Sequence record: NC_041972.1
Length of the DNA: 64,000 nucleotides
Reading direction: 5' to 3' (one strand)
Shown: one piece after another, positions 5,919 through 45,166 of the stretch
Layout: the number at the start of each line of letters is the position of its first letter
How positions within the stretch are numbered: position 1 is the stretch's first letter
Notes under the pieces: generated by a model
What the model was told of the DNA's origin: nothing
Databases searched by the model: none
Seen by the model: the letters and a program-made list of their open reading frames with translations, nothing else
Made by a program: the position numbers and the translations under genes

Positions 5919-5946
5919 GAGGAGGGGTAGCCCTCCTCTTATGCCG
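5919..5946 (+). terminator. Hairpin + TTATGCCG element
   Basis: GAGGAGGG-gtag-CCCTCCTC followed by TTATGCCG. Confidence 0.6.
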
Positions 5947-6726: not shown

Positions 6727-6760
6727 AGAAAATCTTAGACCTATATAACGGCACTGATAG
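6727..6760 (+). promoter_or_regulatory. Putative phage early promoter (copy A)
   Basis: AGAAAATCTTAGACCTATATAAC-N5-TGATAG; near-identical copies at 7333, 29649 and 37304. Confidence 0.65.
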
Positions 6761-35086: not shown

Positions 35087-35998
35087 ATGAGTGATTTTAC
35101 TGACTTAACGAAATTGAAGACCGAATTACCACAAAACATCCAAAAGATTGATGAGCAGGATGATGTGGGTGACTTCAGCGATCTTAACGACTACCTCATG
35201 ACCATCATTCCGGATGAACGGCGTGAGCGCTTGATCGCGATCTGTCAAAACTTGAGCACCCTGCAGTACCATCAAGTCCAGCCCGATGTGGATCGGTTAC
35301 TGATGATGGCTAACGACGGTGAAGCGCCGTCGGTACTCGATGACCTGACCCGGTTGTTATTTGAACACGCTTATGACTTAACGAAAAACATGGGCTTTAA
35401 CTGGGCTGATGAGATTGAGTTTGATCAGCTGTTCCTGCTCGGTGATGTAATCGAAGGTGCCATGTTGATTGATGGCATGGAAGACTACGGCGACCTCTCA
35501 GCGATCCTGGATGGCGATGACTCGGTTGAAGAGAAGGTGGTGGATATCTGGGGCCTGGTGCTCGACAAAGACATGCACCATCTCTTTGAACAAATCCAGT
35601 CCATCGAACCGGCAGTGATCAGCGGGATCAAACAAGTCACGACCCGCCCGTATGCCGAAGACGATTATGCAGATGTGCAACGTCCACTTGAGTTCGTGGT
35701 TGAGCGGTTGGTGAAAGTCCGTGAGATGATGAAGACCGATGGCATTGCTTACCAGCATGTGGCCAAGGGCGGGGCATTAGGCGTTGAACTCGATTCACTG
35801 ATTACGCTATACACCCCTGAGTTGAATGCCGTAACCGATCCGATCGAACTGACCGACCTGCTGGTTGCCTTTACCCTGATCAGCAACACCCCAGATGGTT
35901 TGGTGAAATCCACCGCATCCCGGCTGGCAGAAAAATGGATTGATGATATCGAAGTCATCAATGTGGTAGGTAAACATATCGACAGGTATCCCGTGTGA
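35087..35998 (+). CDS. Conserved acidic protein (phiKZ gp79-like, probable virion component)
   Basis: 303 aa, very Asp/Glu-rich; overlaps the start of the vRNAP subunit (GTGA). Confidence 0.65.
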   Translation: MSDFTDLTKLKTELPQNIQKIDEQDDVGDFSDLNDYLMTIIPDERRERLIAICQNLSTLQYHQVQPDVDRLLMMANDGEAPSVLDDLTRLLFEHAYDLTKNMGFNWADEIEFDQLFLLGDVIEGAMLIDGMEDYGDLSAILDGDDSVEEKVVDIWGLVLDKDMHHLFEQIQSIEPAVISGIKQVTTRPYAEDDYADVQRPLEFVVERLVKVREMMKTDGIAYQHVAKGGALGVELDSLITLYTPELNAVTDPIELTDLLVAFTLISNTPDGLVKSTASRLAEKWIDDIEVINVVGKHIDRYPV

Positions 35999-37305
35999 AT
36001 ATTCGCGACTATTTAATCATGGCCTTTCGGGCAGGGGCTTACAAGCAACGCCAGTGGGTGTTGAGTGTCATGAGTATCACCCAGACCCCGGATGGTAAAT
36101 CCGTAGCAGACAGTATGATCCCGTATCAGGCACACCGCATCAACATCGGCGCGACCCTCGATTGGGCTTACTGGGACGACTTCAACAAAACCTTTGTGCC
36201 GATTGAGGGAGTGGATGTTAACTTCCCGTTGTTTCGACCCGAGGATCAATACACACTACAACCTGGGGATTTTGCCAATGTCACTGAAGAAGTTACTACT
36301 ACTTTCGGCCGTATTCTGGCTAACCATTATTATTTTATCGATGTGGTCGGTGAACGTGTCCCATTTCAGAACGTAGAATTCAACCGTGGGATGTTGGAGA
36401 AGATCTACAAGGCCCGGGTATTAGAAGACGCCCAGGACTTGCGGCGCTCTGATCCGTTCTACCTGACTGTCGATGAATTCAAACGCTCCGTGGATAACGG
36501 CTTTGCCTTGGGTGGGTTGTCGAAACTTTGTGTACCGACTGCTTGTCCGGAAACCATGTATCCGCCGAAGTTCATCATCGAGATGCGTGACCGTCTGTTT
36601 GAAGAGCACAAGGATGAGCTCAACAACCCGGTGGTCATGGGGCGTATTCAGGATGAGCTGTTAAAGCACTACCGTGAGTTCCTAATGTCCACCCCGTCAG
36701 CCAAGTTCTTTGTGATCAAGAAGACCATCGACCAGGCCTTCAACAACATGTTCTTGACCGGCGGTATTGCCGGGGCTTTTGGTGGTAACACTGTTATTAC
36801 CAACTCGCTGTACGAAGGCTGGAACCTGAAGAACTTCCCGGCGTTAGTGAATGGCTCTATCGAAGCTTCCTTTGACCGCGGTGCGGCTACAGCCGATGGT
36901 GGTGAGAAAGTGAAGATGTTGATCCGTGCCACGCAGAACATCCGTATCACCGATGATGATTGCGGCACCCAGCTCGGGGTACCGTGGGTGATTGAAGATG
37001 CCGGCAAAGCCCGCTTCATTAACTCTTACATACTGGATAAAGGTGTGACGATTCTGTTAACTCCGGAGAACATTGATAAGTTCATCGGTAAACCGGTCAT
37101 GACCCGGTCACCTAGCTTCTGTAAGAAATCCCATGGCGACTCCTGTAAGTTCTGTGTCGGGGCACATAACGCCACCAACCCACGCGGGATGTCTTCCGGT
37201 ACCTCGAAAATCGGTTCTACCCTGATGTTGCTCAGTATGAAAGCGATGCATAAAGGCAGTAAGATCGATTTGATCGAATACAACCTGGATGAAGTGTTCA
37301 ACTAA
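35995..37305 (+). CDS. rpoC: Virion RNA polymerase beta' middle subunit (phiKZ gp80-like)
   Basis: TTFGRILAN, S.DRGAATADGG, ITDDDCGT, RSPSFC...GDSCKFCVG Zn-site; 436 aa. Confidence 0.88.
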   Translation: MNIRDYLIMAFRAGAYKQRQWVLSVMSITQTPDGKSVADSMIPYQAHRINIGATLDWAYWDDFNKTFVPIEGVDVNFPLFRPEDQYTLQPGDFANVTEEVTTTFGRILANHYYFIDVVGERVPFQNVEFNRGMLEKIYKARVLEDAQDLRRSDPFYLTVDEFKRSVDNGFALGGLSKLCVPTACPETMYPPKFIIEMRDRLFEEHKDELNNPVVMGRIQDELLKHYREFLMSTPSAKFFVIKKTIDQAFNNMFLTGGIAGAFGGNTVITNSLYEGWNLKNFPALVNGSIEASFDRGAATADGGEKVKMLIRATQNIRITDDDCGTQLGVPWVIEDAGKARFINSYILDKGVTILLTPENIDKFIGKPVMTRSPSFCKKSHGDSCKFCVGAHNATNPRGMSSGTSKIGSTLMLLSMKAMHKGSKIDLIEYNLDEVFN

Positions 37306-37337
37306 AAGATCTTAGACCTACATTATAAAAAGGATAT
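37304..37337 (+). promoter_or_regulatory. Putative phage early promoter (copy D)
   Basis: AAAAGATCTTAGACCTACATTAT-N5-GGATAT. Confidence 0.6.
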
Positions 37338-37359
37338 GATTTAATAAAAGGAGTTCCCG

Positions 37360-38076
37360 ATGTATGGTCTATTGATCTTAGCACTACCCCAGTCACCGTA
37401 TGTCCACATGAGTGCGATGACTGCGGACAGGTTTACTGAACTGCTCCCACAGTTCCAGAAAGAGCTCGATGCAGATATCTTTCCCAACGTCTGTTTCCAA
37501 GGCGCGTTTAACGTCAGCAACACTCGTACTGTAACGCCCTTATTCATTCCGTGTAGTGGTTTGGTATCGGCACGGGAGTTGGGTTACGAACAGATCCGTA
37601 ATATTCTTGCTAACCCAGAGAAAGAGATCCAGCACGTCACCAACATCGGTGATTGGTTAGGTCGTCCGGGTAAGGTGATGTTCGATAATGCGGATGGATC
37701 TGTGGATGAGGGCGTTGTGACCGATATGTACAAATATCTGGTACATGAGAGAAGAGAGCGTTCTGTCTTTCGGTTCAGTCCTGTTGATCTCAGTATCACC
37801 GATACCGAACCATTGCCAACTCACCTCTACCCGCGTGATCATTTCTACGACCAGGTCTACATCGACAAAGACGGTGAGCGTGCTTTCCTGTCTTACGGGT
37901 CGTGCGGTGAAGAAGGCTGTGCCATAGAGCCAGGCGAAGAGAAACCCGTGCAAGTGTACGGCGTTACCTACTCATCACTGGATGAAGCGGCCCGTTGCTA
38001 TAACCTGCCTGAGCAGTACGTGAAAGAACGCGTTGAGTCTGACAGCCTTGAATGGCTGGAGTGGTCATATTTGTAA
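37360..38076 (+). CDS. Degenerate GIY-YIG-derived protein with C-terminal NUMOD1/IENR1-like HTH (paralog A)
   Basis: C-terminal KPVQVYGVTYSSLDEAARCYNL...VKERVES...W.Y; shares TNIGDWL and VTD.KYL with 41626..42408. Confidence 0.6.
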   Translation: MYGLLILALPQSPYVHMSAMTADRFTELLPQFQKELDADIFPNVCFQGAFNVSNTRTVTPLFIPCSGLVSARELGYEQIRNILANPEKEIQHVTNIGDWLGRPGKVMFDNADGSVDEGVVTDMYKYLVHERRERSVFRFSPVDLSITDTEPLPTHLYPRDHFYDQVYIDKDGERAFLSYGSCGEEGCAIEPGEEKPVQVYGVTYSSLDEAARCYNLPEQYVKERVESDSLEWLEWSYL

Positions 38077-38204
38077 AAGTATTTGGGGATGAGACGCAGA
38101 GCTGATTCCCATCTACGGTAAGTTGTTCAAGGAAGCAGCAAACCGGTTATAAAAAATGAAAGGGTTTTCGTAAGATAGTCAGTGCTCCGTACCTGAGACA
38201 ATAC

Positions 38205-38402
38205 ATGACCACAAACCCGCAGTTTATTTTCGTGGCTCAGAATTCTGATGCTACACACAGCGTAGAGAAACTGGAAGTAGGACGCGATACCGATACCCAG
38301 AAGAACCTCACGGAACTTCGTAAAGGTTTGCCGTTCGACTTCTCGTTTATCATGTCTGAAGAGGCGATCTATCAACTTCGACAGGCAGGGCACATCAACT
38401 AA
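38205..38402 (+). CDS. Small hypothetical protein
   Basis: 65-aa ORF filling the gap; weak RBS. Confidence 0.5.
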   Translation: MTTNPQFIFVAQNSDATHSVEKLEVGRDTDTQKNLTELRKGLPFDFSFIMSEEAIYQLRQAGHIN

Positions 38403-38417
38403 ACTGCTGAGGTAGTC

Positions 38418-38870
38418 ATGACGAACAAATCGGAGATCTCACACGGTGGTGGCGATCAGCCTATGGAAAAAGAGCAAAGCAACTTATCCGTACTGGTGAA
38501 CTACTCCACAGGTGTGATGGAAGGTGACCGTTTTAATTACTCGGTTGCATTGGCGCTGTTGAAAGACGGCATCAAAGTGAAACGCGAAGACTGGAAGAAC
38601 GCTTTCCTGGTGTTCGTCCCGGGTAGTCAGAATGTTGAACTGCCAAAAGGGTCGCCGTATGAAGTCGCACTCCACGGTAAGAAGTCCGTTGCCAATATTC
38701 GTCCGCACATCGATCTGTACACGGAGTACGGTGAATTCGAAGTCGGTTGGACAGCCAACCAGGAAGACACTAACGCCGATGACTGGATGATTGTCTTAGA
38801 CAAGAACACCAATCAAGACGACAGTGCCGACGAAGAGAAAGAGTCCTCAAACGACGACTCGAAGTCATAA
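38418..38870 (+). CDS. tad2: DUF2829-family protein, Tad2-like anti-defence signal sponge
   Basis: FNYSVALALLKDGIKVKREDW...FLVFV...PHIDLYT.YG.FEVGWTANQEDTNADDWMIV matches F.EAL..LK.G.KV.R.GW...PYI...T..G...GW..SQ.D.LA.DW.IV. Confidence 0.8.
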   Translation: MTNKSEISHGGGDQPMEKEQSNLSVLVNYSTGVMEGDRFNYSVALALLKDGIKVKREDWKNAFLVFVPGSQNVELPKGSPYEVALHGKKSVANIRPHIDLYTEYGEFEVGWTANQEDTNADDWMIVLDKNTNQDDSADEEKESSNDDSKS

Positions 38871-38875
38871 ACCCC

Positions 38876-38904
38876 AGGAGAGCTTCGGCTCTCCTTTTAT
38901 GCCC
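38876..38904 (+). terminator. Hairpin + TTATGCCC element
   Basis: AGGAGAGC-ttcg-GCTCTCCT followed by TTTATGCCC. Confidence 0.65.
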
Positions 38905-38919
38905 ATTAAGGAACATGTC

Positions 38920-39279
38920 ATGAGTGAAAAGAAAGCGTTCGAAGTGGTATTAGACAGTCGTCATGAACCGTACGAGGCTTACCAGTTATTAGTGGCGCGT
39001 ATCAATACGTTATTACGCACCGGTCAAGGCTACCATGAAGTGAAACTCACGAAATGGCAGCTTTACGATAACGGTCTTCTTATCAAAGGAGATGATGATG
39101 TGCATATCTCCTTGTTGCGTCATTTCTATTACGATAAGCAACGCAATACATTTGGTGGTGGCTTCATGACCTTTGAAATCCTGGAAGATCTGGGTCGTTA
39201 CTACAAAGTGTCCGATATCACAGAAGGGATGAGCGAGAACGTTGGTCTCGTCTTTACGATCACGGTAACCACACCATAA
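38920..39279 (+). CDS. Unknown-family protein, tandem paralog 1 of 4
   Basis: AAGGA RBS; EVKLTKWQLYDNGLLIKGDD..HISL...YD...GG...FTITVT. Confidence 0.7.
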   Translation: MSEKKAFEVVLDSRHEPYEAYQLLVARINTLLRTGQGYHEVKLTKWQLYDNGLLIKGDDDVHISLLRHFYYDKQRNTFGGGFMTFEILEDLGRYYKVSDITEGMSENVGLVFTITVTTP

Positions 39280-39286
39280 GGAAACT

Positions 39287-39655
39287 GTGATGAAACCACT
39301 CTTCGCCATGAAGTTTGATACCCGGGATGCGGGATTAGGGGATCAGCTCGATCTCTTGCAATCACGGGTTAAGGCTTATTCTAAACACGGCACCATGATC
39401 AAGGATGTAGCGGTGACGGCCTGGGTGGTCTGTTCGGATAACATGCCGGTTGCCGGTGATGACCCTGCTCATGTCAGCATTATCCACCGTTACCGTTACG
39501 ACATCGAACAACAGTGTGTGGTCGGTGGGGTCAGTGCCATGGATGCTCTGCGTGAGATCTGGTCGGCGTATGGTCCTGACTCTACCCTCCCGCCGTTCAG
39601 CCGGATACCCGGTGCTGTCGATATGCAATTTACCTTAACTGTGTTCACTATTTAA
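39287..39655 (+). CDS. Unknown-family protein, tandem paralog 2 of 4
   Basis: DVAVTAWVVCSDNMPVAGDD..HVSI...YD...GG...FTLTVFT. Confidence 0.7.
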   Translation: MMKPLFAMKFDTRDAGLGDQLDLLQSRVKAYSKHGTMIKDVAVTAWVVCSDNMPVAGDDPAHVSIIHRYRYDIEQQCVVGGVSAMDALREIWSAYGPDSTLPPFSRIPGAVDMQFTLTVFTI

Positions 39656-39668
39656 AGGAGATACCCGT

Positions 39669-40061
39669 ATGGGAGTTTCTACTGCTGCTGCTCGTCGTTC
39701 TAAAGAAGGGGTGTTTACCCGGAGTATTGAAGTGCGTCATGATCACTGGAAACGGGACATCACGGATTTAGGACTGGATGTCCATAACCTGGTGTTGTGT
39801 AAACAGGAGATCGTATCCGTTACCCTCACTGCCTGGCGGGCGTATGATGAGTGCGGTGTATTGCGCGGCAGTGCCAAAGAGTTGAAGTTAGACATTACGG
39901 AATGGTTCCTCGGTGACAAAGGCCCGGTCATTAATGATGCGATCAAACCTCTCACGTTTGCCTTCATCATTAATCAACAACGCAGCCAACGCACGCCCTG
40001 GGTAAAAGATGTCCGCTTAGGGCTTAACCTGTCCATTGTCTACAAGAGGATTCAGCAATAA
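39669..40061 (+). CDS. Unknown-family protein, tandem paralog 3 of 4
   Basis: AAGGAG RBS; SVTLTAWRAYDECGVLRG...LNLSIVY. Confidence 0.7.
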   Translation: MGVSTAAARRSKEGVFTRSIEVRHDHWKRDITDLGLDVHNLVLCKQEIVSVTLTAWRAYDECGVLRGSAKELKLDITEWFLGDKGPVINDAIKPLTFAFIINQQRSQRTPWVKDVRLGLNLSIVYKRIQQ

Positions 40062-40405
40062 TGGAAATTGTCCACCAACTCGATCTTAGCCATGGCTGGG
40101 AACCCTTCAACCGCCTGAAAGCCGCCTTTGCCAAGAAACCCCCGGAGGCGATCCACATCACTGCCTGGGTCGCTCATGGCTATAAAGGAAACCTCATCGG
40201 CGATGAGCAAGTGGTGAAAGGGTCGTGCCAGGAGTGTCGGATTGATGTGACCCACATCTTCTTTCCCAGTCGGCCTGAGATCTTGATTGGTTTGTCGAGC
40301 TTCATTAACACCATTAATCGTGACGGGCCGGTGAAGATCCCGGCCTGGACCGGATCGATTACTCTTTGTCTTGAATTAGCGATAAGTTATACAGATAGAA
40401 TTTAA
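40061..40405 (+). CDS. Unknown-family protein, tandem paralog 4 of 4
   Basis: TAATG coupling; AIHITAWVAHGYKGNLIGD...LELAISY. Confidence 0.65.
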   Translation: MEIVHQLDLSHGWEPFNRLKAAFAKKPPEAIHITAWVAHGYKGNLIGDEQVVKGSCQECRIDVTHIFFPSRPEILIGLSSFINTINRDGPVKIPAWTGSITLCLELAISYTDRI

Positions 40406-40512
40406 TCGGCATATATTCTGTCTCGTTAGCGTAAGCTCGCTAAAAACCCTTTTAAAGTTTTGTATAACAAACTATCAACTTTGTAGAAAGAAACAAATAG
40501 GAAATTAATCTC

Positions 40513-41223
40513 ATGTTGCATGAAAACTTTGAAGCCTTAGTGGCGAACATCGCCAACCAAATCAATCAGCTGGAACCAGAGGATCTGCCGTCACTGATCC
40601 TGACCAAGAGCGAGGTCTACATCAACGACAAGCGACACGATCGCACGCGTCTACTGCTGAACCTGTTTACCCCACAACCCGGGCACACGCACGACGTGAC
40701 CTTCGATCAAGAGCTGCAGGATGCTTTCGCTCACAACAACCTGGAGTTTATCAAAGTCGGCGAGGGGATCGCCTACGGACTACTGCGTACCAGTATCGTT
40801 AACAACGAACCCGCGGTGTTCTGGATTCACGCCGATGTCTCCGATGATGCATCATTACTGAAGCAAGCCTGGGACATCATCACCGACCTGAAGAAGAATG
40901 CGGGTTACCCCCAGGCGTTTAACATTGACCTGCTCGACGTAAGCTGGCATGCGTTAAGCTGGGCACAACTGCTGGGGACTTTGCTTGACCGCACTGACCC
41001 GACCCGCCGGTTCCGTTTGGCAACTAACCCCGATTACGATTTTGTGTTATCCCAGAAAGCCATCACGTACTACCAGGAGACGTTGAGTAAACGTCCGATG
41101 GCACCGGTTGCTTACCTCGATGACACTAACCTGTTTAATGGTGGCGACTTTAACGACAGTGATCGCAACTGGGCAATCGCCCCGAACGACAGCACCCGCC
41201 CTATCGTGAAGGTGTATGTTTAA
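40513..41223 (+). CDS. Hypothetical protein
   Basis: AGGA RBS after an AT-rich intergenic region; 236 aa. Confidence 0.7.
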   Translation: MLHENFEALVANIANQINQLEPEDLPSLILTKSEVYINDKRHDRTRLLLNLFTPQPGHTHDVTFDQELQDAFAHNNLEFIKVGEGIAYGLLRTSIVNNEPAVFWIHADVSDDASLLKQAWDIITDLKKNAGYPQAFNIDLLDVSWHALSWAQLLGTLLDRTDPTRRFRLATNPDYDFVLSQKAITYYQETLSKRPMAPVAYLDDTNLFNGGDFNDSDRNWAIAPNDSTRPIVKVYV

Positions 41224-41281
41224 ATAAACACAAGCTCCAGATGGTATACTTGGAAACATTTATTGATCTGGAGCCCCAGCC

Positions 41282-41581
41282 ATGCAAAACAATGACGATG
41301 TGGTGCCGATGCACTATAACCACAACGTGGACATGAATAACCCGCTTGACGTGGATGAAGAGGCGTTAAAGGTTCGCTTCGCTGCGCGCCTGTGCAGCTT
41401 CCTTGATCTTGCCGAGCAACTGAATAAGGATGACTTAACCCAAAACGATATCAGTCAGTTCACCGTCGGTATCGTAAACTTAGTGTGTGACTCAATGGGC
41501 AGTAGTCCCAAACGAGACCTTTACAGGAGACAGATGGTTGACAAACTTGAACCTGTTCTGTCGAGGCATCTGATTAAATAG
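41282..41581 (+). CDS. Hypothetical protein
   Basis: GGAG RBS; 99 aa. Confidence 0.65.
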   Translation: MQNNDDVVPMHYNHNVDMNNPLDVDEEALKVRFAARLCSFLDLAEQLNKDDLTQNDISQFTVGIVNLVCDSMGSSPKRDLYRRQMVDKLEPVLSRHLIK

Positions 41582-41625
41582 TCGGAGGCGTGACGGAACG
41601 CGACTACATTGCAGTATAAAAGGAT

Positions 41626-42408
41626 ATGGCTATGACGTTCGAAAAAGAAGGGGACACGTTGCACATTGTGCGACTGAGAACCAAGGGCTGGTACCACATG
41701 ACGGTAACCAGCGATCCTGATGCGAGTATGGATATCGTTAACACGAACTTACGTCAGGGCACTTTTACTGATCCACTTTTACAACACCAGTACGACATCT
41801 GTAAAAAAGAGATGGGGCAAGATCCCAATCCAAATGACATCGTTTTCCACCAGTTCGTGACCACGCCAGACCAGACCGGGTATCAGTCTGGCCACTGGAT
41901 GATTCGTGATCACATTCGCCACGGCTATTCACTGAAGTGCCTGACTAACATCGGTGACTGGCTTTCGACCGCAGCCTATCTTTATATCCCAGACCCTGAT
42001 GATAAAGAGGGCGGTGAGAGAAAATACAAAGTAACTGACTTAGGTAAGTATCTCGACAAGGAAGAGTTATTGGGTCATTCTGACCACCTGCCGATGTATT
42101 TCTTGCCTGATGAGGAACCGGGTGACAGCTATGATGAGTTGATTGAAACCCATCGTCTTCCGCAACCTGACAAAGGTTACTCTTGTGTGGCCATCAAGAA
42201 CGGTATGTCGTTTAGTTTGCTGACGTACAACAACTCCAAGCGGGTGCTTTCAGAAGAGGAAGAACTGCAAACCACAACCGTCCCAGTCAGGGCAGATGGT
42301 TTGCTGTACAGCTCCGTCTTAGAGTTGGCTATGGCTAAGAACGCCCCAGTCTGGTTTGTCTTGGAGATGCTAACCTCCGAAACCGACCCAAACTGGCATT
42401 TCGTCTAA
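41626..42408 (+). CDS. Degenerate GIY-YIG-derived protein (paralog B)
   Basis: N-terminal LHIVRLRTKGWYHMTVT...LRQGTFTDPLLQHQYD mirrors GIY.I.N..NGK.YIGS...L..G.H.N..LQ..YN without GIY/YIG or the catalytic Arg; C-terminal PVRADGLLYSSVLELA. Confidence 0.6.
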   Translation: MAMTFEKEGDTLHIVRLRTKGWYHMTVTSDPDASMDIVNTNLRQGTFTDPLLQHQYDICKKEMGQDPNPNDIVFHQFVTTPDQTGYQSGHWMIRDHIRHGYSLKCLTNIGDWLSTAAYLYIPDPDDKEGGERKYKVTDLGKYLDKEELLGHSDHLPMYFLPDEEPGDSYDELIETHRLPQPDKGYSCVAIKNGMSFSLLTYNNSKRVLSEEEELQTTTVPVRADGLLYSSVLELAMAKNAPVWFVLEMLTSETDPNWHFV

Positions 42409-42496: not shown

Positions 42497-44077
42497 GTGA
42501 GTGAAGCTAACCAGAACATCGTAGAAAGCTACGACGACCTGCCGAAGAACGCGCAGAAAGGTGATCGCTATACCGTGCGTGAAGACGCGATCGTTTACGA
42601 ACTCCAGGAAGATGGTTCTTGGAAAGACGTAGACATCAACGAACAGGTTGATCAGGAAAACGAAGAGCAGGCGCAGACCGAAGATGGTCAGCAGTCTGAC
42701 ACCGGCGCAACTGATCAGCCAGCCTCTGATGAAGAGAGCGATGCTGATTCGTCTGAAACGGCAGCTACCGATGAAGAAGACCAGGTAGATGACAACGGCG
42801 ATGACAAGCAGACTCCGGCTGAAGAGAAGCAGGAAGAAGCAGCGCAGGCGGTTGATGAAACCCAACCACGTGATGACCCTTACGTACGAGGAGCGAACAG
42901 CGATGCCAATCCGGCACAACCTGAAGATGCGAATCAAACGCAAGATCAGACTGACGAAGCAGGACAAACTCCTGATTCTTCTGACGATACCAACGCGCAG
43001 CAGGAAAGCACTGATGGCGTTGCGACGCAGGATGCGAAAGAGCAGGCTAACATCCCGGAAGGGGTAGATCCTGAAGAAGCGCAACCTGACAACCAGCCAC
43101 TGGCGGTAGCGCCGGTTGAACAACCCCCTGTCCAGCACGAAGCGGTCGCGGTTGATCCTAACGCCGACCAACCATCACCTGAAGCGCGTCCAGACAGCAA
43201 GATCGAAGAAGCAGCTGAACTGAACGCACAGAAAGAAGATGCGGCTCGTGATGAGATCGCTGAAGCCGGTGCCGATGCACAAGCTGCGACCTCTGCTGAG
43301 CAGACTGACGCTGGCAAAGCCAAAGAAGACGCACAGGCTGAAGGCCAGTTGCCGAACGATGGTGCTGCTGATGATGTCGCCGCTGGTAAACCACGTAATG
43401 ACCAGACCTACACCGAAGATCAGAAAGCGGCGAACACGCCAGCGCCTGAAATCGTGCAGGCTCAGGAAAACCATACGTCAGAGCCAGACCCGGTAGTCAG
43501 CCAGGAAGAGATCCATGTGCAGAACGCCACGGACCCTGACCAGCCGACTATTATCCCGCAGGAAGCGAAGTCTGAATCACTGGCGCATCAAGCGGCTGAT
43601 CCAACGCAGGAAACTGTGTTTGTTAAGCAGGATGAAAACCTGGACCCGGAAGTGCGTGTGCTGCAACAGCGCATTGAAGAGTACATCGGCAACATGGGTG
43701 TGAACGGTAAGCACGATCGCCGTGACGGTCCGAAGTATCAGGCTCGCCTGTACAAAGACCTGCACTCCATCATGGCGCTGGAGCCAGTGAAGTTCAAGCA
43801 AGTGATGGACTACCTGCTGAACCGTGTGTATGAAGAACGTGCCGGTGCTTTCTCCGACACCTATACGCGCCGTTACTTCGATCAGCTGTCACCGATGCAC
43901 ATGCAGACCGATCGCGTGCGTGAGTTTGACAACATCCTGTCGCTGGTAACTACTGTGGGTCATTCCAAAAACCGCAGTCGTGCCCTGCAGCAGGTTGATC
44001 TGCAACGCGCCCTGAAGAACATTCAGGATGCCGGTAAGCAGCAGCGTATGGCAGCGTACTTTGATGCTCTGCGTTAA
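42497..44077 (+). CDS. Protein with long acidic disordered region and conserved C-terminal helical domain (phiKZ gp81-like position)
   Basis: AAGGAG RBS, GTG start; about 330 aa of D/E/Q/A/P-rich sequence, then LQQRIEEYI..M...G..YQARLY...FDNIL.L. Confidence 0.7.
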   Translation: MSEANQNIVESYDDLPKNAQKGDRYTVREDAIVYELQEDGSWKDVDINEQVDQENEEQAQTEDGQQSDTGATDQPASDEESDADSSETAATDEEDQVDDNGDDKQTPAEEKQEEAAQAVDETQPRDDPYVRGANSDANPAQPEDANQTQDQTDEAGQTPDSSDDTNAQQESTDGVATQDAKEQANIPEGVDPEEAQPDNQPLAVAPVEQPPVQHEAVAVDPNADQPSPEARPDSKIEEAAELNAQKEDAARDEIAEAGADAQAATSAEQTDAGKAKEDAQAEGQLPNDGAADDVAAGKPRNDQTYTEDQKAANTPAPEIVQAQENHTSEPDPVVSQEEIHVQNATDPDQPTIIPQEAKSESLAHQAADPTQETVFVKQDENLDPEVRVLQQRIEEYIGNMGVNGKHDRRDGPKYQARLYKDLHSIMALEPVKFKQVMDYLLNRVYEERAGAFSDTYTRRYFDQLSPMHMQTDRVREFDNILSLVTTVGHSKNRSRALQQVDLQRALKNIQDAGKQQRMAAYFDALR

Positions 44078-44140: not shown

Positions 44141-44644
44141 TTACACTAAAATGCCGTTAAAAGCCACCGGGTCATTAGCCAGGAATGGGTTGTACCGAAC
44201 CACAGACTCTAGCGTGTAATCGTAGTAGATAAAGTCCAAGCATTGTGCACCCTGGTAGGTAGTCCATGACTTTGATAGATAACCATTGCGGTCTAACGCA
44301 ACGTAAGCTGGACGGCTCGCCAACGTAGTAAACTTCATCAACACTTGTGGTTGGTTATTAAGGTTATTTGTAAATACAGGCAGGGAAGGATGCGCATGCC
44401 TTGCAATCGAACACAACCAAGAGTCGTAGGTAAACCACTCTTTATACGGCGTGCCATACATGTTGTTGGATGTGTTTAACGCGATATTAACATATTTACC
44501 GGCAGTAGCAGACATGCTGGTACTTGCGTTCGCTACCTTTGTATATTTAGCGGTATTAGCTGCAAGCCACTCCTGGAATTGCGCATAGGTCATTTTGGTG
44601 CCTATCTGCGGCTGTGACTTGCTGCCCATTAACATCTCTAACAT
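44141..44644 (-). CDS. Hypothetical protein, paralog of 44657..45166 (possible tail-associated)
   Basis: MLEMLM start; KMTYAQF..WL..NT.KY, MYGTPY, IARHA.P, DRNGY, LDFIYYD, FNGILV. Confidence 0.75.
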   Translation of the reverse strand: MLEMLMGSKSQPQIGTKMTYAQFQEWLAANTAKYTKVANASTSMSATAGKYVNIALNTSNNMYGTPYKEWFTYDSWLCSIARHAHPSLPVFTNNLNNQPQVLMKFTTLASRPAYVALDRNGYLSKSWTTYQGAQCLDFIYYDYTLESVVRYNPFLANDPVAFNGILV

Positions 44645-44656
44645 GGTAACTCCTGA

Positions 44657-45166
44657 TTAGAGCAACACCCCGTTAAACGGTACCGGTGTGCCGCCATTTA
44701 ACGGAGTCCACCGCATCACAACACCCTGGGTATTGTCGTAGTAAATAAAGTCAAGCACAGTACGGCCGTTAAATGATCCGTAAGACAAGCTGGTGTAACC
44801 GTTACGATTGAGGCCTGAATAGGCACTTTTGGTAACATAAGGTCCAAGCTTCATTAAACAAAACTGTTTATTCGCCAACATGTAATCAAACATCGTTTGT
44901 GCCGGACACGCATGTCGTGCGATCCTTGCCCAAGTTGAATCGTGAGTACAGGAGTTTAAATAGGGGGTACCCCACATGTTACCGCCATCAGCCGTCATGG
45001 AGATCCTGGCATAGCCGTTCGTAAACGTGGTGGACGAAGGGGTGCCTGTATTCGACGCTGCACTGACCGCACTGTACTTAGTGGTATTGGTATTTAACCA
45101 AGTAACAAAATCCGCATAGCTCATCTTTACAGTTTTCTTGCCAGCGTACATTAATAACTCGAGCAT
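44657..45166 (-). CDS. Hypothetical protein, paralog of 44141..44644
   Basis: MLELLM start; KMSYADF..WL..NT.KY, MWGTPY, IARHA.P, NRNGY, LDFIYYD, FNGVLL; GAGG RBS. Confidence 0.75.
   Translation of the reverse strand: MLELLMYAGKKTVKMSYADFVTWLNTNTTKYSAVSAASNTGTPSSTTFTNGYARISMTADGGNMWGTPYLNSCTHDSTWARIARHACPAQTMFDYMLANKQFCLMKLGPYVTKSAYSGLNRNGYTSLSYGSFNGRTVLDFIYYDNTQGVVMRWTPLNGGTPVPFNGVLL

Follow-up and report, generated by a model that had tools for sequence, protein, structure and literature searches.

The phage nucleus shields phage DNA from restriction enzymes and CRISPR, yet nucleotide-signalling abortive-infection systems still reach the phage. Members of the Tad2 family inhibit Thoeris types I, II and IV, the cyclic oligonucleotide-based anti-phage signalling system (CBASS) and Pycsar, with a specificity that differs by homolog (10.1101/2025.08.24.671296; PMC10680739), and PhiKZ uses an unrelated sponge, Tad1, which a 2026 review names as the only described anti-defence protein of a jumbo phage (PMC13282480). 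Here we describe a locus with a Tad2-family gene within a window of 64,000 nucleotides (the whole stretch of DNA that was analysed, to which positions refer unless a contig is named), which is 100% identical to positions 186001-250000 of Erwinia phage vB_EamM_Deimos-Minion (NC_041972.1; genus Agricanvirus, Chimalliviridae). The group to which this phage belongs comprises chimallin-encoding, nucleus-forming jumbo phages, and a close relative, RAY, has been characterised (PMC10299810). The locus, at 37304-42408, is a block of ten + strand genes, gp277-gp286, running from gp276 (35995-37305) to gp287 (42497-44077). We find that it is probably a variable accessory hotspot shaped by homing endonucleases, in which one gene, gp279, encodes a probable immune-signal sponge.

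What sets the block apart is the changing number of genes between the same two anchors. In Klebsiella phage Eowyn there are 0, the gene for virion RNA polymerase beta' subunit 2 directly adjoining the gp287 homolog, and there are 4 in Proteus phage 10, 8 in SA002, 10 in Agricanvirus, 11 in pEa_SNUABM_37 and 9 to 13 in metagenomic relatives, such that content at this fixed locus ranges from 0 to 13 genes. A first-pass annotation of the window, made from the letters alone, had described the block as an insert, and the empty site in Eowyn together with the 4 to 13 genes of the other relatives bears this out. It had also expected that the block would not turn out to be invariant core content; this holds between lineages, as content differs in AH06 and in L018, L019 and L022, three Agricanvirus-like contigs from metagenomes, and fails within the Erwinia amylovora phages, as content is identical in all nine of their agricanviruses. 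Judging from these sequence comparisons, the block is a real lineage-specific accessory hotspot between two conserved chimallivirus genes. The gene order given in the first-pass annotation (a promoter, a degenerate GIY-YIG gene, a 65-amino-acid open reading frame, a Tad2-like gene, four paralogs, two orphans and a second degenerate GIY-YIG gene) matched the annotated genes gp277-gp286 exactly. The features are as follows, with the basis of each identification in brackets.

35995-37305, + strand: gp276, virion RNA polymerase beta' subunit 2, left anchor and conserved core gene (annotation; 308 phage records by tblastn)
37310-37336, + strand: promoter-like motif copy D, core ACCTACATTA, with GATA downstream (motif counts; aligned with copies A-C)
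37360-38076, + strand: gp277, an intact open reading frame read as the N-terminal half, lacking the nuclease, of a free-standing GIY-YIG homing-endonuclease gene, paralog A (phrog_6749)
38205-38402, + strand: gp278, a 65-amino-acid protein, always directly 5' of the Tad2-like gene (phrog_11788)
38418-38870, + strand: gp279, Tad2-family (DUF2829) protein and probable nucleotide-signal sponge (Pfam PF11195 and PDB matches)
38877-38903, + strand: terminator-like element, a hairpin (7-bp stem, UUCG loop) followed by TTTTATGCC, which ends the Tad2 cassette (-16.8 kcal/mol, z -3.3)
38920-39279, + strand: gp280, member 1 of a small-protein array (phrog_6658)
39290-39655, + strand: gp281, array member 2 (phrog_6658)
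39669-40061, + strand: gp282, array member 3 (phrog_11644)
40061-40405, + strand: gp283, array member 4 (phrog_11536)
40513-41223, + strand: gp284, a genus-restricted protein of 236 amino acids, with a 107-bp AT-rich spacer 5' and a long hairpin (z -4.1) 3' (phrog_11471)
41282-41581, + strand: gp285, a protein of 99 amino acids (phrog_11459)
41632-42408, + strand: gp286, probably homing-endonuclease-derived, with a NUMOD1/I-TevI-type helix-turn-helix, paralog B; alternative ATG at 41626 (phrog_6749)
42497-44077, + strand: gp287, right anchor, with a conserved C-terminal domain and an acidic, low-complexity N-terminal part (homologs adjoin beta' in Eowyn)

Both anchors have known counterparts in RAY: gp270, the ortholog of gp276, is beta' subunit 2 and localises as a virion RNA polymerase subunit (PMC10299810), and the right anchor (RAY gp281, Deimos-Minion gp287) was detected, and was abundant, in published mass spectrometry (PMC6690015). 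Between them the genes are laid out in units. Motif D, gp277, gp278 and gp279 form the first, closed by a hairpin terminator that is conserved and covaries; the second is the gp280-gp283 array, two paralog pairs packed tightly together; and gp284, gp285 and gp286 are set apart by hairpins or spacers. A search of the block for boundary repeats and known RNA families returned none.

A pair of relatives bears on how the site gains genes. Contig L016 is collinear with SA002 (88-91% nucleotide identity) except for 1,502 bp in place of 37 bp exactly between the beta' stop codon and the next gene, and the extra DNA consists of a promoter motif, a gene encoding a 454-amino-acid protein (P0032) and a hairpin with a T-run. 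Presence or absence of this kind after the beta' stop is a hallmark of mobile, free-standing endonuclease cassettes. P0032 begins with a gp277-like N-terminal half and continues into Pfam GIY-YIG and NUMOD domains, and gp277 is the best match of the N-terminal halves of both P0032 and P0035, each of which has an intact GIY-YIG domain downstream. Of note, SA002 (L010) and the near-identical L016 differ by a second clean indel, of 434 bp, which carries a gene for 142 amino acids. In another metagenomic relative, L017 (Logan SRR28879900), the beta' subunit 2 gene was called as two open reading frames (218 and 206 amino acids) separated by one break, and this split gene lies directly 5' of a GIY-YIG-containing gp277-like gene.

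Within the block itself, gp277 and gp286 are paralogs (both phrog_6749; 26% identity over 227 amino acids), as the first-pass annotation had held. Its further claim, that both are GIY-YIG-derived, found no GIY-YIG motif to stand on, and descent from GIY-YIG genes is supported indirectly, through the helix-turn-helix, the relatives and weak structural matches. The direct Pfam match to I-TevI_DNA-bd in the C-terminus of gp277 was weak (E 0.0045), and a profile built from 14 members of the gp277/gp286 family found 69 proteins among 1.84 billion representative ones. In 44 of these the match involved only the last ~45 residues, and the domains they carry (I-TevI_DNA-bd, PF20987, in 40 of the 44, NUMOD1 in 39 and GIY-YIG in 9) identify the C-terminus of gp277 and gp286 as a helix-turn-helix of the homing-endonuclease type. 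A further 12 matched over their full length, and in three of them (441-454 amino acids) the gp277-like part is followed by a bona fide GIY-YIG domain; the half of these relatives that bears GIY-YIG matched I-TevI (1mk0) at 7e-5. The family alignment of gp277 and gp286 has no invariant Glu, and the catalytic positions are not conserved. PDB sequence searches with the two proteins gave nothing significant, and defence-system and NCBIfam models run against all ten proteins of the block gave only a weak 'HEase' match to the gp277 helix-turn-helix.

Structure prediction gave a weak match of the same kind. The AlphaFold2 model of gp286 (predicted local distance difference test score, pLDDT, 64) has a beta-hairpin at residues 9-26 followed by helices, and its top three Foldseek matches in the PDB were all the I-TevI catalytic domain (probability 0.77-0.80, E 0.4-0.6, template modelling score 0.50-0.55 on the target), with the next matches at a probability below 0.06. 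The hhalign comparison with the true nuclease half places the first beta-hairpin on the GIY...YIG strands, the motif strands being filled by other residues. We read gp277 and gp286 as probable descendants of GIY-YIG endonucleases that have lost the chemistry.

The two relics appear to have had different fates. Every family member examined in its genomic context sits in this one locus. Deimos-type phages and L019 carry genes like gp277, which AH06, L018 and L022 lack, and gp277 alleles are mosaic, with a synonymous divergence (dS) of 0.4-0.5 against ~0.1 in neighbouring genes. Divergence between agricanviruses peaks at 37195-37940, covering the end of beta' (its last ~100 bp) and gp277, with 20-59 differences per 150 bp against 0-6 elsewhere. 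Recombination associated with homing endonucleases had been suggested from the start, and both the presence and absence of cassettes after the beta' stop in relatives and the mosaic gp277 and beta' 3' end uphold it. The gene gp286, on the other hand, is always the last before the gp287 homolog (in Agricanvirus, SNUABM_37, SA002, Proteus phage 10, L018, L019 and L022-L025; 31-83% identity), is 100% conserved within E. amylovora phages and belongs to a family with invariant residues of its own. Its fixation across the clade and complete conservation in E. amylovora phages suggest a domesticated DNA-binding protein, and gp286 is not a recent mobile bracket of the block.

Allele exchange is also apparent in gp281, which has two allele classes among agricanviruses that are otherwise 95-100% identical: amino-acid identity drops to 74% in Desertfox, MadMel and Ea35-70, compared with about 100% for the genes beside it, and the exchanged tract is confined to ~39290-39740. 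With a dS of 1.37 and a ratio of nonsynonymous to synonymous divergence (dN/dS) of 0.14, this contrast indicates recombinational replacement rather than positive selection. The same holds more widely, since dN/dS is far below 1 for every gene (0.00-0.29) and the divergent alleles of gp281 and gp277 have high dS; positive selection was thus rejected, and local divergence is explained by allele replacement. Over larger distances the first slot of the block has at least three alternative occupants (a gp277-like gene, a 217-amino-acid AH06_288-like gene and an HD_4 gene), and the gp277-like and 217-amino-acid genes also occur together. The array has three or four members in the comparison of AH06, L018, L019 and L022; a gp283 homolog is absent from the three contigs, and an unrelated gene for 143 amino acids fills its slot in L018 and L019. 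Identity to AH06 is 58% for gp280, 33% for gp282 and 37% for gp284, compared with 83-90% for gp275 and gp276.

The gene that gives the locus a link to host immunity is gp279. Residues 40-126 of its product cover positions 2-73 of the 73-position Pfam profile PF11195 (Tad2-like, DUF2829) with an E value of 4.6e-14 (53.2 bits against a cut-off of 25), and the protein matched the solved structures of SptTad2 (8wjd, 1.1e-5), MoTad2 (9eib, 3e-5) and Tad2 (8v3e, 3.4e-5); a four-sequence gp279 profile gave weaker matches to SPO1 Gp34.65 (4e-3) and HgmTad2 (AcrIIA7; 8kbi, 0.026). The call of a 65-amino-acid open reading frame followed by DUF2829/Tad2, already made in the first pass, is confirmed by this Pfam match and by the matches to solved structures at ~1e-5. 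Both family blocks are kept, namely the N-terminal helix block ending in Trp, (R)xxW, and the C-terminal WxxxQxDxxAxDW, and to these gp279 adds an almost invariant 38-amino-acid N-terminal extension and an acidic C-terminal tail. The Tad2 fold consists of an N-terminal helix and a five-stranded antiparallel sheet, assembled as a homotetramer. It is 82-87% identical across lineages, compared with 76-78% for beta'. We consider gp279 a credible member of the Tad2 family and a probable nucleotide-signal sponge, and since specificity differs among Tad2 homologs, its ligand is not predictable.

Four Agricanvirus-like lineages differ in 20 of the first 128 columns of gp279, with seven of the 20 falling in residues 112-121 and one beside the Trp (residue 60). 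Incidentally, eight of the 20 variable columns thus lie in or beside the two segments that line the pocket for glyco-cyclic ADP-ribose (gcADPR) in solved Tad2 proteins, the remainder of the sequence being almost invariant. Elsewhere, the proteins most closely related to gp279 come from small Pectobacterium, Escherichia, Lactobacillus and Vibrio phages. The closest outside the genus is a DUF2829 gene for 91 amino acids in Pectobacterium phage Koot (L020), 42% identical over the core; in this autographivirus it is placed between two internal-virion-protein genes, a setting unlike the early-type cassette here.

The genes gp278 and gp279 travel together. In all five Agricanvirus-like lineages the 65-amino-acid gene (72-85% identity) is found with gp279, directly 5' of it. 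It was ruled out as a universal Tad2 partner, as Koot has no such neighbour. The hairpin at 38877-38894 that closes the unit (UUCG loop, z -3.3) has a changed stem sequence with the pairing kept in AH06, L018 and L019, where its 3' flank is the invariant TTTATGCCCATTA(A)GGAA, and in L018 and L019 a copy of the promoter-like motif stands directly 5' of the 65-amino-acid gene. The motif at this position and the covarying terminator stem mark [motif, (gp277), 65-amino-acid gene, Tad2, terminator] as a self-contained cassette. It is confined to Agricanvirus-like phages, and the sister clade (SA002, SNUABM_37 and Proteus phage 10) has no Tad2. Between Deimos-Minion and AH06, dS is 0.54 for gp278 and gp279 compared with 1.4-2.9 for their neighbours, which suggests that the Tad2 cassette is younger, or was exchanged after the two phages split; constraint on synonymous sites is an alternative.

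The terminator is not alone in the window. Intergenic spacers repeatedly contain a G+C-rich hairpin with (T)TTATGCC(G) after it, at 5939, 13207, 18020 (- strand), 29161, 38897, 44123, 45239 (- strand), 46344 (- strand) and 52738 (- strand), and TTATGCC occurs 15 times in the window compared with 6.75 expected, which looks like a terminator family. Late transcription of phiKZ starts at a short TATG element (PMC7598289); the TATG in TTATGCC resembles it, so the hairpin element may end one transcript and start another.

At the other end of the unit, motif D is one of four copies in the window (the others being at 6733, 7339 and 29655), all on the + strand, intergenic and 50-85 bp 5' of a start codon. 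The string ACCTAYATNA occurs 4 times in the window where 0.65 are expected, a count reached in 0 of 100 shuffles, and in 164 kb of the genome there are 18 copies of the looser core CCTAYATNAY where 5.1 are expected (shuffle maximum 12, n=200), with 17 of the 18 on the + strand and ~15 of the 18 in intergenic spacers. Immediately 3' of the beta' stop codon, copy D is retained in every agricanvirus and in AH06, L019, L016, L017 and Proteus phage 10, even though the beta' proteins are only ~55% identical. A scan for sigma-70-type promoters found sites rarer than chance. As a general rule, jumbo phages that encode RNA polymerases carry a phage-specific, AT-rich conserved motif 5' of presumed early operons (PMC7598289), and motif D matches this rule. 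Of the early promoter that had been proposed here, the motif is therefore real, by its counts and its conservation across genera, and the 'early' timing is inferred. Of note, the spacer 5' of gp286 (41582-41631) contains a degenerate motif-D region (ACTACATT...TATAAAAGGATATG) and resembles the spacer 5' of gp277; this region is not conserved in AH06, L018 or L019.

Families in the block are narrow, comprising 3, 10 and 11 proteins in word-indexed protein searches. In the array, gp280 and gp281 are paralogs (both phrog_6658; 25% over 119 amino acids), as are gp282 and gp283 (26-31% identity, E 1e-6 to 1e-8 in a small database). The link between the pairs is an hhalign match of 70% probability (E 4e-5) over 49 columns around a common T-x-W strand, from which we tentatively regard them as related; four paralogs of a single family had been claimed, and what stands firmly of that claim is two clear pairs. 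The family is confined to Agricanvirus-like phages and the SNUABM_37 protein SNU37_312, which is 47% identical to gp280. The array profile had no match in the PDB; a relationship of the array to Tad2 was rejected (hhalign probability 0.1%), as was membership of the 143-amino-acid genes of L018 and L019 (probability 0.2%). By tblastn, gp284 was found in Agricanvirus only and diverges fast (37% identity in AH06), with no PDB or Pfam match, and gp285 gave no significant PDB match and has weak relatives in SA002_2900 and SNU37_320. The description of these two as orphans is essentially right, gp284 being genus-restricted and gp285 having only weak relatives, in SA002 and SNUABM_37.

In other phages the same interval holds a gene of another kind. 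An HD_4 gene lies at L022:6286-6906, in pEa_SNUABM_37 (L012:8977-9603), at L017:9461-10411 and at L023:6571-7179; that of L022 occupies the first slot, directly 5' of the 65-amino-acid and Tad2 pair, and its product matched structures of MESH1, Lmo0812 and RelA/SpoT hydrolases at 1e-9 to 1e-6. A Pfam search with the genes that SA002, Proteus phage 10, SNUABM_37 and the metagenomic relatives carry in the island recognised HD_4 and the helix-turn-helix only. The toxSAS toxins, implicated in immunity against phages, are neutralised by small alarmone hydrolases (PMC7229694; PMC11782079; 10.1101/2024.07.05.602228). HD_4 is the one comparative hint beyond Tad2 of a counter-defence theme, by association and not as proof.

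These observations lead us to a model in which free-standing GIY-YIG cassettes would land exactly after the beta' stop codon, each with its own promoter motif and terminator. One ancient copy would have been fixed as gp286, its nuclease motif no longer recognisable and its NUMOD1-type helix-turn-helix kept; gp277 would be a second relic, devoid of the nuclease half and still exchanged between phages; and the other genes would have accumulated between the two. The product of gp279, presumably made in the cytoplasm, would most likely bind and sequester an immune messenger, a nucleotide of the kind used by Thoeris, CBASS or Pycsar, and would thereby weaken abortive-infection systems against which the phage nucleus is no barrier. 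The other genes may be further host-interaction factors, with evidence for counter-defence limited to gp279.

A number of observations weigh against this model and have to be set beside its rivals. For gp277 and gp286, there was no PF01541 (GIY-YIG) match at E up to 1, the Foldseek support for gp286 is weak (E 0.4-0.6 on a model of pLDDT 64), and hhalign of the family against the true nuclease half reached a probability of only 7% (E 0.005), with a full-length, collinear alignment. The same results would suit clade-specific DNA-binding regulators that share a NUMOD1-type helix-turn-helix, with the GIY-YIG fusions of relatives being secondary, as would the position of the true GIY-YIG domain of P0032, P0034 and P0035 after the gp277-homologous region and not inside it, and the fixed, fully conserved gp286 with its own invariant residues. 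We nevertheless judge such an origin unlikely: the order of an N-terminal alpha/beta domain, a linker and a C-terminal NUMOD helix-turn-helix is of the I-TevI type, the collinear alignment sets the first beta-hairpin on the GIY...YIG strands, the only Foldseek matches with a probability above 0.1 are I-TevI, and near-identical phages can differ in whether they carry a family member, which is how mobile endonuclease genes behave. In gp279, the loop that follows the conserved Trp has two residues fewer than in Tad2 proteins of known structure and the SxTD pocket motif reads N-Q-E-D, the pocket having been mapped to HgmTad2 numbering through SPO1 and SptTad2, not by direct alignment; across lineages these positions are N/T/S-Q-E/P/Q-D instead of S-Q-T-D, with Trp, Gln and Asp kept and the Ser and Thr positions varying. 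In HgmTad2, W21/N22 and S90/T92/D93 mutations abolish gcADPR binding (PMC10680739). Given the shorter loop and the changed motif, nucleotide binding by gp279 is not assured. In a pangenome study of E. amylovora, CBASS_I and Pycsar appear as rare systems only, and there is no mention of Thoeris or tad2 (PMC13480210). One could accordingly see in gp279 a DUF2829 protein with no sponge role, for instance a virion-internal or injected protein or one acting on phage nucleotide metabolism, which would leave the island without anti-defence content; the partly conserved pocket, the extension and acidic tail (both absent from solved Tad2 proteins), the Koot relative (42% over the core) between internal-virion-protein genes and the absence of reported Thoeris in E. 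amylovora would all agree with this. It strikes us as improbable, as Tad2 members tested across the diversity of the family commonly inhibit at least one signalling system (10.1101/2025.08.24.671296), gp279 is not among the mass-spectrometry-detected proteins discussed in PMC6690015, and both conserved motif blocks are intact.

The block as a whole raises the question of how far the immune theme reaches. The seven genes other than gp277, gp279 and gp286 match no characterised family in Pfam, PHROG, PADLOC, NCBIfam and PDB searches, and the promoter class and timing for Agricanvirus are borrowed from the general rule of PMC7598289. Where an island would call for at least two known anti-defence genes side by side, only gp279 matches a known family, so 'anti-defence island' stands on one gene and guilt by association, and for the other seven genes it is a hypothesis. 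Of the anti-defence module first proposed, what survives is a genuine Tad2 gene at a variable hotspot; the rest, seven genes matching no anti-defence or defence family, is not supported. A generic region of accessory or host-takeover genes that share no theme, with the Tad2-like gene as one passenger and no collective counter-defence role, comparable to the numerous variable regions elsewhere in chimallivirus genomes, would account for those seven of ten genes, for the purifying selection on all genes, for sub-units parted by terminator, hairpins and spacers, and for a sister clade (SA002, SNUABM_37 and Proteus phage 10) that fills the hotspot with no Tad2; moreover, accessory genes without a known function make up 56% of the genes of RAY (PMC10299810). 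This we regard as possible, if somewhat unlikely, because two nucleotide-signal proteins, Tad2 and HD_4, recur in the hotspot across lineages, and because gp280, gp282 and gp284 (58%, 33% and 37% identity to AH06) have diverged so much further than gp275 and gp276 (83-90%). At the opposite extreme, the hotspot could be the first multi-gene counter-defence locus of nucleus-forming phages, with endonuclease cassettes keeping the site open, lineages loading it with Tad2 or an alarmone-hydrolase-like enzyme, and gp278, gp280-gp283 and gp284 representing new families of inhibitors or sponges; we view this bolder version as doubtful. The reading we prefer thus remains an endonuclease-shaped accessory hotspot with a single probable sponge.

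Two features of the neighbouring genes deserve mention. The Proteus phage 10 homolog of gp275 (L011:8384-9217), which is syntenic across the clade, is annotated 'putative anti-crispr protein', a label for which we saw no support. Beyond the right anchor, gp288 and gp289 (44141-45166, - strand; 167 and 169 amino acids) are similar in sequence and look like a tandem duplication; AH06 has one gene only in their place, and the dS of gp288 is raised between agricanviruses.

Set beside known systems, the locus resembles the anti-defence clusters of T4 and lambda (Tesson et al., as cited in PMC13480210) in that its accessory genes are small, lie close to a promoter and share a variable locus with a known counter-defence gene; as these clusters are described in that citation, they differ in bringing several known anti-defence genes together, compared with one known family here. 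The HD_4 gene of the relatives' hotspot is like the small alarmone hydrolases (MESH1 and SpoT-hydrolase-like) by its structure matches, but is absent from Deimos-Minion and has a putative role. The value of the seven further genes is that of a short list of clearly bounded candidates rather than of a system already demonstrated, and the interval between beta' and gp287 is a defined place in which to seek further counter-defence genes.

As for the endonucleases, gp277 and gp286 share with free-standing GIY-YIG homing endonucleases (I-TevI and Seg-type) the C-terminal helix-turn-helix module and the domain order, and their same-slot relatives share more, with an intact GIY-YIG domain matching I-TevI in a promoter-and-terminator cassette that is present or absent. 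They differ in having no recognisable GIY-YIG motif or catalytic residues, gp286 being fixed clade-wide like a domesticated gene and gp277 corresponding to the part 5' of the true nuclease domain. The homing endonuclease at the virion RNA polymerase gene of PhiPA3 and phiKZ likewise ties an endonuclease gene to a multisubunit polymerase gene of chimalliviruses, and here the beta' 3' end shows raised divergence; that enzyme recognises and nicks the polymerase gene of a rival phage (PMC13282480), whereas the cassettes described here are free-standing, of the GIY-YIG type, located 3' of the gene and known from sequence alone. The locus would be a clean natural example of endonuclease cassettes beside a core polymerase gene creating and maintaining a site of gene gain, loss and allele exchange, at which one endonuclease copy has apparently been domesticated.

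Finally, gp279 is like the known Tad2 proteins (SPO1 Gp34.65, HgmTad2/AcrIIA7, SptTad2 and MoTad2) in its PF11195 domain and in matching four solved Tad2 proteins over the whole core. It differs in its 38-amino-acid N-terminal extension, acidic tail and shorter loop after the Trp, in pocket positions that are its most variable part, in always being preceded by a 65-amino-acid gene, and in being encoded by a nucleus-forming jumbo phage, its sponge role being predicted. A Tad2 cassette fixed across a genus of Erwinia chimalliviruses would be, next to the unrelated Tad1 of PhiKZ, a second and independent case of a sponge in nucleus-forming phages.

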